Below, piece after piece: positions 10,553 to 59,398 of a stretch of 64,000 bases of DNA; the first letter of the stretch is position 1; each line of letters opens with the position of its first letter. Under the pieces are notes generated by a model, which saw only the letters and a program-made list of their open reading frames with translations, ran no database searches and had not been told where the DNA came from. The translations under genes were made by a program, and so were the position numbers. The stretch spans positions 1 through 64,000 of the forward strand of contig CAJFCJ010000021.1 of NCBI GenBank assembly GCA_904063045.1, read 5' to 3'. This stretch comes from Dimorphilus gyrociliatus. Taxonomy: Eukaryota > Animalia > Annelida.

Positions 10553-11396
10553 ATTAATAATAAAATTGCTCAATCAAATATAATTAATGTAACAAACCTT
10601 CTTCTCAATATTTAAATGGAATGCTATTAGCTTTATTTAAAACTGGCACAAGGAATTCAAAAGAGATATTCAACAAAACAGATGACAATAATGACATATA
10701 TAAATAAAAGATAAGAGAGGAACCGTTGAGATGAATGTCAATAAGGAAATAAGACATTTGATTGTTCTATCCTCTACCTCTTATAGTAATCATTCAATTT
10801 TAAGTCTATGAAGGCGGAAGGAAGAGTTTTTTATTTATTCTCTGACCGACTTTTTAACAAAATTGAATCATCGTAGAGGGAAGACATTTTTTATAGTATT
10901 GATTAAAGTGTCAGAAACAGTGTTAAATGTAAGGTATACTAATCCCTTTCCTCTTCCGCCTCATAACTGTTTTAAGTAAAATGTCAATGTCAAACGTCTC
11001 TGTGGTGTCATAGAGAGACAGGAAATAGTAGGCTTAATATTTGAAACATTTAAGATAGGATAAGGTTCCCTAGAGGAACTGTCTGAAAGCTAATAACTTC
11101 AATAGAAATCCATTTTACTGAAACTTTATTAGCCCATTATATACGAATTTTCTCGTTAGAAAAATACCTGAATTTATAACTGTATAGGGGTTTAGAATGA
11201 CGCCTATCTAAGCGTACTTCCGACGCCCCACGTTTATTAGTTAACGTGTCATGGTCTTCTGACGACAGTCATATGCAGGTTTTCCTTTTCTTTTTGCATT
11301 TGAGCTATTGCTTGTTAAAATGCTAATTTAATAAATCAATTGAATACTAAAAGAGTGCGTGCGTGTCTGAGTTTCTATATATGAAGCAGAGGTGGG

Positions 11397-54615: not shown

Positions 54616-56222
54616 TAATTTTTGTCGATTATCTCCTCTTAGTATGTTTAAGAGATATTAGCTTTAATTAATTGCGACTAAACGTCAAATTTTTGAATAA
54701 ATTCTCGATTAACATTAAATCAGAATGTCCAAGAGAATATTTTTTAATCCTTGTAAACATGTGAAGCTGGTAATAAATAATTCATTAAACTTGACGATAA
54801 TCAATTGAAATGAAATTTTTTTCAACTCAATTTCAAATTAACTCCTCTATGGCTGTTATTTAGGCTTTTTTCTTACTATAACCTTATAACCACTGACTGA
54901 AACCATTAGAATAAAAAAGATCGGCGCCAGTTCGATACTAAAAAGAACATCTGTTCCATTCTATTTGTTATTTCGATATAACGTTCCGACATTCCCCTTT
55001 TTAATTTTTATTCTGAATTAAACAAAGTAAAGCTCATAAATATTATGTAATATTTTATAATAGACTTGAATTATTTAATCATCTGTTAATTTTCAATTTT
55101 TTAATATATTCATAAAAAGAAGATAATAAGGGATTCTTCATTAAAAATAATTAGAATATGTTTTACATATTTTAGCTTTTATTGCGTGTTTTTATCAATA
55201 TTTTCCCAGAAATAATAATTCTATTTTTGGATGATGTGCTGCAAATCAACACAAAAGGAAGCTTGTTTATATTGTTTTTTATTTTATTACCATGTTGCTA
55301 GTGTGTATGTATGTATGCAAGTAAACAATAATTATAGACGGCTTTTTACAGTATTAATAGTATTTAAAAAACAATTCACGTGACTAAACGTAACGCCAAA
55401 TTAAAGAAAAAAAAATACGTCCCAATGCCAAAGTATTTGTATGGTTCTTCGTATTTTTCGATGGACATTCCGCTTGACAGATCTGTTCTAATCCTAACAA
55501 ATTCGGATTAGTTCCGGCTGAAGCTAAATCGAGAATAAGCAGTTTTATCGAACGATTTATAATGTTTGGCCTAAATTACAAAAAAGAACCAAAGTATTAT
55601 AAATTTTAAGAAATATCGAGACAGAGAGAGAGAAAAAGAGAGAGAGAGAGAGAGAGAATGAGGTGTAAGGACTTAAGTTTGAATAAAATTGGCTTTTCTC
55701 TTTAAATATTTACTTCTAAAAGTCATTTCTTCACCAAAAAAACTTTGATTAATTGTATGAGAATATTTAATTATATAATTAATGAAACGTAAGCTAATCA
55801 TAAATAATGGCGAAAAATTTAAAGAGAAAATGTATCTTTCATCTAAGTAAATTGTTTGGGTTATTAAGTTTAACAAGTGTATTTTATTAATTAAAAATAT
55901 AATATTATTTTCTTTTGTTGCGTAATTAATTATGTTATATTTAAAAAAAAAAACACACAAATTTCTACGGAAGGATTAGTTTATCGTTTTTAACAAATAC
56001 TGTATACATAAACATTAACAATTTTATAATATAAGAGAGAATAGAATGGCTGTATTCTTAATATTAATTATAATTCTTTTGAAAAGAATTTATTTGCATT
56101 TCTATATTTATGATTAAGAAAAAAAATTCTTCCTCTTTATTTAATATCTTCACTTCCTCTTGTATTTGTTCATTATTGGCTGTTTTTCCGTTATAAGCCA
56201 ATATAGTATTTCAATTTAACGT

Positions 56223-57685
56223 CTATTTCTTAATAATTCCTTTCTGTAATAGAAAACATAAATAAGAATAGAAAATATAACAAAATAATAAAAAAGCATA
56301 TAGAAAGTAACCTGGTAGAGAGAGTGATGATGATTCGAATGGAAAGTGCAGCAAGAGACGGGAAAGAAACCTTTTTGCCCTTTGCATGTGCCCTTCCATA
56401 AACCCCTTTTTGGTAATCTTTCCAAATCTAGTATGACGTCACCTATCCTTAATTCCAGTTCCCCTTCACCCAAGCAAGGTCGGTCGGTATGAACCACGGC
56501 CATACAAACTAAATCTATAGCTTCCAAGTGCTTAGCTGGCGACCCGAAACCCCACAAGGCTAATTGGTGCCGTCTTCTCGGATCCATACATAGTAAACCG
56601 CTCCAGAGCAGCATAAAAGATAGTAATATAAAAATAGTCATGAACCCAGTTAATGAGATTAATATTCTTACGGTATTACTGGAAAATTGGGCCTTACTCT
56701 CAAGAGTATCACAAAACGACCATATGGCGTCTCCTCCTTCAGTATAACTACGCCATTCAGGTGATAAGGACGACCATCCTGGATCGCACAAACATCCAGT
56801 ACCATTTTCAAATGCCTTTCCATGTTTGCAATGAAATGTGAATGTAATAGGGGAATTAACAATATCTAATTCGTCCAGATCCCTTAATTGTAAAGCGTCT
56901 CTCGCCTCGTCTTTGGTAACGTTTTCTTTCAGACTGATACATTTATTCGATTCAAGCAAAAGCATATAATTCGGTCTTGATACAAGTTTACATCGGTCCG
57001 CCAAATTGCATAATCCCGTCGTTACATTGAAGTAATTGATCATACCGCAATATTTATGTCTACATAAAGCCGGTTTGCAATTGGCAAATCTATCCAAATC
57101 GGTCGCAGGACATCTACTAAAATATTCAAAGATAATCGAGAGGAAATTAGGTAAGAAAGCCAAATCGGATATTCTCGTGTCAAATCGGATCAAGACGGAT
57201 ACGGCAATCGGACTACCATAAGTTATAGATACATTGCAATCGCCCTTCCAGTCGTAGGGGTATAAAGTAGTGGCAAGCATTTTTATATCCCTTTCATCTT
57301 CAAACTCTAAATCTCTTACTTCACCGGCTAATACTTCCAAAAGCCCGCAATCTCTATACGATTTCTCTTTTACGCCGTTTAGGCTCCATCTATCAACACA
57401 ACAATGTTGAGTAGTTCCTAATATTTTAGGTAATTTTGGTGATCCAATATTCCTAACTCTAACATCTAAGCCCCATTTATATATAATATTTTTTTTTAAA
57501 AAAAAAACATAAACCTCAGTTATACAGTTAAAAACCGGATTGTTATATAGAATCTTACAGAATATTATTCCTATATTATTTATATTAATCGGATATATTC
57601 CTTTATCAACAACTTCTATTGGTGGAATGTTACACGATATCTTTTTGATAATTAGCAATAAACAATTAACTATTATTATCATCAT
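56223..57685 (-). CDS. Uncharacterised type I membrane protein: signal peptide, Cys-rich/EGF-like ectodomain, TM, cytoplasmic SH3 domain
   Basis: Long ORF in AT-rich DNA. Start MMIIIVNCLLLIIKKISC (ATG 57685); EGF-like CKHGKAFENGTGCLCDPGW; TM ILISLTGFMTIFILLSFMLLWSGLLC; SH3 signature GEGELELRIGDVI...GLWKGTCKGQKGFFPVSC. Likely 68-nt intron 56311-56244 gives the end YQKGIIKK*; a possible in-frame intron lies near 57470-57570. Confidence 0.75.
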
Positions 57686-57717
57686 CGTCTTTTCTATATA
57701 TAAACTAGGTAAATTAT

Positions 57718-57743
57718 ATAATAATAATAATAATAATAATAAT
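57718..57743. repeat. (AAT)n microsatellite
   Basis: Perfect AAT run upstream of the EGF-TM-SH3 start codon. Confidence 0.85.
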
Positions 57744-58014
57744 ACGGAAATATACAAATGTCTTTCAAATTTAAATTAACTAATTGTTCTCCATACAAAC
57801 CAACCTTAGTAGGCCTAATTAATTGTAATAATAATAACGACGACGAATATCCACCAGGTAAGCTTATATTGTATACTGCTTAGAATACTTATTGTAATTT
57901 AAACCTCAAACTAGATAAGCTTATTATTCGTTATAATATATTTATATTTGTTAATAATTCATAACATTTTAAATGCTTTATAAGTTTCAAATATCTTCCA
58001 AGTTGAATAATGAA

Positions 58015-59398
58015 TTATACTTTATTTAACGCTTGTTTAAGATCGCTAATTAAATCTTTAACTTCTTCAAGACCAACACTGTTTAGGGAATGAAGTAAAG
58101 ATTGATAAGAGAAGAGATTAAGTTCCCACGATGCTATACTACCTAAATCTAATTAATCCTGGTGTAACGAAAGCTCTTTCTCTTTCCTCGTCGTTCATAA
58201 GCATTGGTCCATGTGTCATTGTCGCCGGATGGCACATTAAACTTTCAACACCACCTAAGGAAACGCCCAAGTGTATAACTCGAACAGATTCTATGAATCG
58301 AACAGCCGCATCTAAGCCGTCTTTCATCTCAAAGGACATCATGCCTCCGCATCCGTTAGGCATTTGCTGTTGAATAATTTTATGACCAGCGTGAGATCTT
58401 AGACCTGGATACAAAACATTCGATACTTTATCCTTTCTACTATCCAAATATTCAGCTATTTCTCTTGCATTTTCCGTGTGTTTCTTCATTCTAAGTGGTA
58501 GAGTTTTGAGACCTCGAAGTAGCAAGCTAGCTTCATGAGGAGACTATATCAATGTTAACAATTTCGTCAATATAAGTTAATGATAATTAGTGTTTTGTAA
58601 TTAGATAAATACCAGTATAGTTCCATATAAACTTCTGGCTATTAGTAGTCGTGACCATAGCTTTTCATTCCTAGTTGAAAGAACTCCAGCAATTACGTCA
58701 GAGTGACCTCCAATATACTTCGTAGCACTGTGAAGAACAATATCAATACCATAGTTAAGAGGTTTGAATAGCACAGGCGAACCAAAGGTTGCATCGACAA
58801 CTGTCAAGATTCCTCTTTTTTTGCCCAAGGCGGCAAATTCTATTAAATCCAAGATTGACATAATCGGATTGCACGGCGTTTCTCCATAGAGCATTACTGT
58901 ATTTGGTTTAATTGCAGCTTCCCAATCTTGCATATCAGAATCAGAGTTTAGCCACGATACTGATACATTGAACTGGGCCATCAGCTTTTTTAATACTTCA
59001 AAAGTACCACTATAAAGTGGATATTGGCATACAATATGATCATTTGCCTTTAGACATTCGAGAAAAATAGTAGAAATGGCTCCCATACCGCTTGAAAAAG
59101 TTAAAGAGCCGTAAGCATCCTCCAAAGATGCTAAGGAGACTTCAACAGCTTGGCATGATGGATTGCAAAGTCTACCATATATAAAACCATCTTCTTCAAG
59201 GATTTTTAGGTAGTCGTCTACAGATGATATTTTATAGATCGCTGAATGATAAATAGGCTGAATAATAGGTTCAACAGCCCGAGTGGATGATTTGAGCTTA
59301 GAACTTATTACTTTTGTACTATCCCCAATATCGGATAACTGAATTCCTAATAATCTATCGCTCAAGTCAGATGTAGCAGGTTTCCACTTTGAAGACAT
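58015..59398 (-). CDS. Cys/Met metabolism PLP enzyme (cystathionine gamma-lyase / methionine gamma-lyase-like), 3 exons
   Basis: YGRLCNP, FSSGMGAIS, ETPCNP, VVDATF, PLP-Lys motif HSATKYIGGHSD, VSLGGVESL, GLIRF|SVGLE. Confidence 0.9.

Follow-up and report, generated by a model that had tools for sequence, protein, structure and literature searches.

In animals, SH3 domains are almost always found in soluble adaptors that are recruited indirectly by receptors. Proteins that link an SH3 domain to a membrane are known at organelles, such as Pex13 at peroxisomes, and TANGO1 and FUT8, whose SH3 domains are luminal. In yeast, Fus1 acts in cell fusion, and its SH3 domain lacks the canonical PxxP pocket and binds a non-PxxP motif. 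Here we describe a gene of the tiny marine annelid Dimorphilus gyrociliatus, located in the 64,000-nucleotide stretch of contig CAJFCJ010000021.1 that was analysed (the window), whose product carries its own SH3 domain behind a Cys-rich ectodomain and a single transmembrane helix. The initial annotation had described this architecture, comprising a signal peptide, a Cys-rich ectodomain with one EGF-like module, a transmembrane helix and a cytoplasmic SH3, and it has proved to be real and unusual, the signal peptide being probable only. The gene is a fast-evolving dinophilid ortholog of an unnamed and unstudied family of animal single-pass membrane proteins.

Gene model and public annotation

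The gene lies on the minus strand and runs from ATG to stop at 57685..56223, exactly the interval first proposed, with three exons and two introns that together specify a product of 433 amino acids. The minus-strand open frame at 56216..57757 comprises 513 codons, and its first in-frame ATG is at 57685. The exon-intron model is based on alignment to the syntenic locus L001, a Logan genomic contig of 24 kb from a related species with the gene for protein P0002, and on comparison with the public protein P0001. Nucleotide similarity between the window and L001 ends at both donors and returns at both acceptors, and the intron lengths differ. Exon 1 (57685..57559, minus strand) contains the start codon, the probable signal peptide and the first strands of an N-terminal beta-sandwich. 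This exon and its GTAAG donor are conserved in L001, similarity being gone directly past the donor, and its mature peptide aligns with the N-terminal columns 17-43 of the family profile (hhalign probability 92.7%, E 4e-7). Intron 1 (57558..57466, minus strand; 93 nt, phase 1, GTAAG..TTAG) has another length in L001 and cannot be aligned with its counterpart; across it, P0001 reads IIF-Y-VRVRN. An alternative donor for this intron, at GTTTATG near 57508, was dropped because cross-species alignment and P0001 place the donor at 57558.

Exon 2 (57465..56312, minus strand) is an open frame of 384 codons plus 2 nt and encodes the rest of the ectodomain, the transmembrane helix and the SH3 domain. 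Intron 2 (56311..56244, minus strand; 68 nt) has the donor CAG/GTTACT and the acceptor TTACAG/, both conserved in L001, and the aligned intron there is shorter by ~20 nt. Exon 3 (56243..56223, minus strand) encodes KGIIKK and the stop codon TAG, and the C-terminus KGIIK shared by the two species is obtained from the spliced frame only. The gene had been called nearly intronless, and rightly so; the architecture lies almost wholly in one exon. Searches took as query exon 2 (window:56312-57466:-), exon 1 or the read-through frame without interruption. Owing to a split codon, the exon-2 translation begins with an artefactual D where the true residue is Y.

A candidate AATAAA polyadenylation signal is present at 56136..56141 on the minus strand, 82 nt after the stop; it is a candidate only, because the hexamer is common by chance in the AT-rich window (~31% G+C). 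The first ~50 nt after the stop codon (56170..56222, minus strand; ACGTTAAATTGAAATAC..) are almost identical to L001 ~11205..11250. This identity is partly explained by the frame of the relative, which runs 9 nt further after a 1-nt deletion, and the remainder of the conserved stretch may be a conserved 3'-UTR element. There is an (ATT)n microsatellite just upstream of the start codon (57715..57750), which the mechanical ORF translates as poly-Leu, and downstream of the gene there is a (CT)n microsatellite (55620..55665).

The read-through ORF matches DgyrCDS12719 (P0001) of Dimorphilus gyrociliatus at 91% identity. In this public model of 833 aa, an upstream Cys/Met-metabolism PLP enzyme (PF01053) is joined to the membrane-protein gene and the signal peptide is skipped. 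If the model were right, the ectodomain, transmembrane helix and SH3 would form the C-terminal half of an 833-aa PLP-enzyme fusion, and the signal-peptide exon would go unused. The deposited protein does join ..KQALNK to ISCNIPP.., and splice sites that could produce the junction exist, with a GT after the AAA codon and an AG within exon 1. However, the PLP frame ends with ..NKV-TAA at 58017..58015, and the stop is at the same place in L001; exon 1 is conserved in its ATG, its hydrophobic leader and its mature N-terminus and aligns with the N-terminus of the family. All of the relatives examined are stand-alone proteins, and those with a printed sequence start with a hydrophobic leader of their own, bar one that begins directly at the beta-sandwich. 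A glycosylated, disulfide-rich domain placed behind a cytosolic enzyme with no signal peptide would make no sense in terms of cell biology, and the fusion is also at odds with the lack of both operons and trans-splicing in D. gyrociliatus (PMC7854359). The stop of the enzyme is its own and is shared in position with the sister species, so these should be two separate genes. It is highly improbable that DgyrCDS12719 is correct; its fusion is almost certainly a gene-calling artefact in a compact genome, and the public Dimorphilus model should be split so that the membrane-protein gene stands apart from the metabolic enzyme.

A poorly conserved spacer of 329 bases separates the enzyme stop from the conserved ATG of the membrane-protein gene. 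ORF pieces of the PF01053 enzyme are found at 58601..59398 and 58139..58525 (within window 57640..59398, minus strand), and its last exon ends with the TAA at 58017..58015. The PF01053 gene is upstream in both the window and L001, so synteny is kept. In L001 (1..5318), a PGAP1-like gene and a pyridoxal-dependent decarboxylase (PF00282) lie upstream; next come the PF01053 enzyme and then the ortholog.

The membrane-protein gene is single-copy in its own genome. Its exon 2 protein is 75% identical to P0002, the syntenic ortholog of the related species, and the exon 2 dN/dS between the two is 0.145. The ratio is 0.14 for the beta-sandwich and the Cys-rich module, 0.07 for the transmembrane helix and 0.165 for the SH3 domain, which has the highest amino acid identity of all parts. 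We conclude that this is a real, stand-alone gene under purifying selection. The dS values between the window and L001 are 0.45 for the SH3 (56336..56509) and 0.50 for the juxtamembrane segment, and ~0.9-1.1 or more for the rest of exon 2. The lower value in the SH3 may be due to chance over 59 codons or to an extra constraint at the nucleotide level.

Domain organization and topology

The order of the parts is a probable signal peptide, N-terminal beta-sandwich, Cys-rich module, EGF-like module, transmembrane helix, short basic juxtamembrane segment and SH3 domain. The ectodomain of ~290 aa contains 15 Cys residues and four N-glycosylation sequons (N-x-S/T), and the tail contains no sequon. 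The hydrophobic N-terminus MMIIIVNCLLLIIKKISC (57685..57632, minus strand) has a mean Kyte-Doolittle value of 2.18 over its first 18 residues. Its h-region includes an Asn, and KK precedes the cleavage site; it is the KK in the c-region that makes the signal peptide probable rather than certain. The equivalent leader in L001 is MNIVYYLLIIINRILC, and most of the relatives with a printed sequence have clear leaders.

AlphaFold2 reached a pLDDT of 34 with a two-sequence alignment and a mean of 79.6 when 54 family sequences were aligned. Numbered by the exon-2 translation, the latter model consists of the beta-sandwich (1-96), the Cys-rich module (107-180), a poorly modelled linker, an EGF-like hairpin (210-251), the transmembrane helix (263-293), a short helical juxtamembrane stretch and the SH3 barrel (320-377). 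The exon-2 part of the beta-sandwich (57167..57465, minus strand; residues 1-100 of the exon-2 translation) is modelled as seven strands in residues 1-96, with pLDDT 88-96, and exon 1 extends it on the N-terminal side. In ESM Atlas, the structure model of the relative P0005 matches Ig-like/CARDB-like sandwiches (CARDB/DUF11-like) with TM scores of 0.33-0.47, the P0005 model itself being poor, and this gives a weak hint that the N-terminal domain may be an Ig-like/CARDB-like sandwich.

The Cys-rich middle module (56927..57166, minus strand) bears the family signature C..D.D....C.P..C..KY.G..NYFN.....C; in the alignment of 54 sequences (A2), C119, D123, C130, C135, Y139 and C153 never vary, and the module has no Pfam family match. 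The EGF-like juxtamembrane module (56702..56842, minus strand) contains C213, C225, C227, W231 and C252, which are nearly invariant in A2. It has the pattern C-x11-C-x-C-DPGW..C, with four conserved Cys and the C-x-C-x2-G-W signature, and is represented by short paired strands in the AlphaFold2 model. The EGF_2, Teneurin-EGF and I-EGF profiles match some relatives only, below threshold (E 0.0015-0.07), and the window protein itself gave no EGF profile match in the Pfam scan. For the ectodomain, a PDB sequence search with the family profile gave only transmembrane or low-complexity noise; the lists from Foldseek on the PDB and from VIA-align wide were filled by SH3 matches and uninformative for this region, and the ESM Atlas feature search gave no match for the window protein or P0005.

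The transmembrane helix (56591..56665, minus strand; ILISLTGFMTIFILLSFMLLWSGLL, followed by C-MDPRRRH) contains the top Kyte-Doolittle 19-mer of the protein (2.41). According to the positive-inside rule, basic residues after a transmembrane segment place the C-terminus in the cytosol. Since the sequons and the 15 Cys are N-terminal of the helix and DPRRRH follows it, this rule indicates a type I topology.

The cytoplasmic SH3 domain (56336..56509, minus strand) has a non-canonical binding surface and ends with GFFPVSCC, as had been reported. Its recognition by profiles had been proposed as a check, with the Pfam families PF00018, PF07653 and PF14604 judged here by their curated gathering scores. 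The result with Pfam is borderline: the window protein scores 22.5 bits (E 8.9e-5) against the gathering score of 22.9 for SH3_1, 21.5 against 30 for SH3_9, and 15.6 against 21.8 for SH3_2. The Nematostella ortholog passes SH3_2 with 26.4 against the same 21.8. All 70 of the 70 matches of a two-species profile to PDB sequences are SH3 domains aligned to the same stretch, cortactin being the best, and a profile of six family tails strongly recognizes the canonical SH3s of multi-SH3 proteins. AlphaFold2 and fold searches agree: the five-stranded SH3 beta-barrel is present (core pLDDT ~85), and Foldseek matches SH3 folds with probability 1.00, TM scores up to 0.83 and rmsd 1.6-2.3 A. The transmembrane helix and the SH3 are encoded in one exon with no intervening stop, so a transcript that ended or was spliced before the SH3 would need an unusual internal splice.

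Alignment with the cortactin SH3 shows that ALYDY has become VHTDR, WW has become LW and FPANY has become FPVSC. Four of the five canonical PxxP-contact residues are lost and only the Pro is kept, and the same is true of P0002 of the sister species, whose SH3 ends with GSFPVSCC, the conserved counterpart of GFFPVSCC. The Cys that replaces the Tyr of NY recurs in P0003, Lingula and Lineus. The Nematostella SH3 has kept the first Trp and one Tyr and has lost the Pro, and other members keep different subsets. Because the binding residues vary even among the SH3-bearing members, a common SH3 ligand is not evident. The earlier suggestion of an altered ligand specificity fits an atypical SH3 with VHTDR, LW and SC in place of ALYDY, WW and NY. 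As for lipidation, the juxtamembrane Cys may be a likelier site of palmitoylation than the terminal CC.

Distribution of the family and history of the SH3 tail

The idea of a lineage-specific receptor rests on an absence of relatives, and for this reason an exhaustive HMM search of 1.84 billion representatives was performed. It returned 113 matches, with ~75 clusters aligning to the ectodomain (query ~30-300, E 1e-26 to 1e-4), the remainder being generic multi-SH3 proteins. Ectodomain relatives are encoded outside the Bilateria by Cnidaria (Nematostella, Hydractinia) and the sponge Oscarella; among spiralians by Brachiopoda (Lingula), Nemertea (Lineus) and Mollusca (Solemya, Mizuhopecten); and among ecdysozoans by Nematomorpha (Gordionus), chelicerates (spiders, scorpions and ticks) and many insect orders; no deuterostome member was found among those looked up. 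The ectodomain family is pan-metazoan, and the gene is not lineage-specific. Every relative that was looked up is named uncharacterized or hypothetical, the ectodomain corresponds to no Pfam family in a scan of 54 members, and no paper was found that mentions any of the six member identifiers searched. Word-index searches returned no named relative: the read-through ORF found itself and one ortholog, the 54-sequence profile found three proteins, and an insect member found only unnamed arthropod relatives.

The 54-sequence alignment contains 12-14 conserved Cys columns, and the invariant or nearly invariant residues are C22, C77, C119, C130, C135, C153, C159, C176, C213, C225, C227 and C252. 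A transmembrane segment was detected in most full-length family members, and the window protein shares with them the conserved-Cys ectodomain and the single transmembrane helix. A quick maximum-likelihood tree of the ectodomain broadly tracks animal phylogeny, which fits one orthologous gene per genome. The dinophilids are on a very long branch, that of Dimorphilus being 2.8 changes per column, and identity to other members is 18-26%.

An SH3 domain follows the transmembrane helix in both dinophilids, in P0003 (an RNA-like 1.9-kb contig), and in the proteins of Lingula (P0004), Lineus (P0006), Nematostella (P0016) and Gordionus (P0038); in Nematostella, all three RefSeq isoforms bear the SH3 tail. 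No such tail was detected in the arthropod, mollusc, hydrozoan and Oscarella members, some of whose models may be incomplete annotations. By parsimony, the SH3-tailed form probably predates the cnidarian-bilaterian split and was lost several times, since the same domain is found in the same position in orthologs from Cnidaria, Spiralia and Ecdysozoa. That the family SH3s are each other's closest relatives could not be demonstrated, the Gordionus SH3 scoring 22 bits against the family tail profile, below generic SH3s. These domains are too short and divergent, and so a single origin of the SH3 tail is argued from its shared position in orthologs and not from SH3 phylogeny. The initial annotation had called for a search for the same architecture in other phyla and had envisaged a receptor formed by domain shuffling in one lineage. 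The same ectodomain-transmembrane-SH3 arrangement is found in a cnidarian (Nematostella), a brachiopod (Lingula), a nemertean (Lineus) and a nematomorph (Gordionus), and therefore any shuffling event was ancient rather than lineage-specific.

Possible function and comparison with known systems

Judged from its sequence features, the protein is probably a surface receptor or adhesion protein in which a non-canonical SH3 couples the ectodomain to a cytosolic partner. It would be located in the plasma membrane, a location that we assume, with the disulfide-bonded, glycosylated ectodomain outside. The ectodomain would bind an extracellular ligand or a partner on another cell, and the atypical SH3 would bring in a cytosolic partner by way of a motif that is not PxxP or is atypical in another respect. 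A non-PxxP mode of recruitment is suggested by the loss from this SH3 of the two tyrosines of ALYDY, the leading Trp of WW and the Tyr of NY. The receptor would in this way be coupled directly to signalling or cytoskeletal machinery with no separate adaptor, and the juxtamembrane Cys might be palmitoylated. A role in gamete recognition, one of those first suggested, finds neither support nor contradiction in these results.

A less likely reading is that the SH3 has a structural role, such as dimerization or stability, or is vestigial, and that function resides wholly in the ectodomain and transmembrane helix, the tail being freely replaceable. The SH3 is missing from many lineages and may therefore be of secondary importance to what the family does. 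In the arthropod, mollusc, hydrozoan and sponge members, the tail is unrelated and is either short or of low complexity, and four of the five canonical PxxP-contact residues are replaced in Dimorphilus and different ones in Nematostella. Against this, no segment is better conserved between the two dinophilids than the SH3 (88% identity, dN/dS 0.165), at least five phyla have retained it from the cnidarian-bilaterian ancestor on, and the confident SH3 fold obtained with AlphaFold2 would not be expected of a decaying appendage; we regard a dispensable tail as unlikely. Topology alone does not distinguish the plasma membrane from an internal one, and Pex13 and FUT8 are among the fold matches of the SH3. 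The protein might instead be a cargo receptor or organelle protein of an internal compartment (ER, Golgi, secretory granule or endosome), with the Cys-rich domain luminal and the SH3 binding coat, sorting or cytoskeletal proteins. A di-lysine signal for ER retrieval at the C-terminus was considered for KGIIKK and rejected, the lysines being at -1/-2 and not at -3/-4; there is no KKXX or KXKXX motif in register, and the relative ends with KGIIKNRR. In addition, a membrane-proximal EGF-like module and N-glycan sequons are typical of surface proteins, and an internal location appears distinctly improbable.

The favoured reading, a surface protein with a coupling SH3, can be extended tentatively. 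It may be that the gene is the annelid member of an undescribed receptor class from before the cnidarian-bilaterian ancestor, a class with its own type of ectodomain and a built-in non-PxxP SH3 that makes an adaptor unnecessary, and that the SH3 was independently lost in arthropods, molluscs and hydrozoans. In this family an SH3 is built into the same chain as a folded Cys-rich ectodomain; the SH3 form is present in cnidarians and bilaterians, and the ectodomain is found also in a sponge. With no Pfam entry, name or literature, the family may represent a new type of ectodomain to be defined. Because the SH3 has been repeatedly lost and its binding surface varies between members, the family offers a natural experiment on membrane-tethered SH3 domains, and Nematostella is a tractable model that bears the SH3 form.

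The true relatives of the Dimorphilus protein are unnamed family members such as Nematostella vectensis LOC5503128, Lingula anatina LOC106153895/LOC106153904, Lineus longissimus LOC135488226, Mizuhopecten yessoensis LOC110448351, Photinus pyralis LOC116179389 and an Oscarella pearsei transcript. They share with it a homologous ectodomain, including the motifs C..D.DPL..C.PV.C..KY.G.RNYFN and C.HG...G.C.C..GW, followed by a single transmembrane helix. The best sequence and fold matches of the tail are the SH3s of soluble adaptors (cortactin, CD2AP/CIN85, Shank3, Grb2 C-SH3 and DNMBP), and its GxC-KG-x-x-G-x-FP stretch is closest to cortactin. In these adaptor SH3s, which are located in cytosolic scaffolds, the tyrosines of ALYDY and NY and the tryptophan of WW are retained, whereas the Dimorphilus SH3 keeps the Pro only and is tethered to a transmembrane helix. 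Fus1, Sho1 and Pex13 gave no Pfam match to the window protein (E up to 1) or to the 54 family members, and none was found by architecture among the 113 HMM matches. Yeast Sho1 differs in having four transmembrane segments and no ectodomain, and Pex13 differs in being peroxisomal and multi-pass with a cytosolic SH3; neither has similarity outside the SH3. Yeast Fus1, like the Dimorphilus protein, is a single-pass type I protein that is glycosylated on the outside and ends with an SH3 of its own, and its non-PxxP binding is also what is proposed for the Dimorphilus SH3. The exterior of Fus1 is short and Ser/Thr-rich, in contrast to the 290-aa folded Cys-rich ectodomain of Dimorphilus. By this comparison, Fus1 would be the closest functional analogue of the Dimorphilus protein and not a relative.
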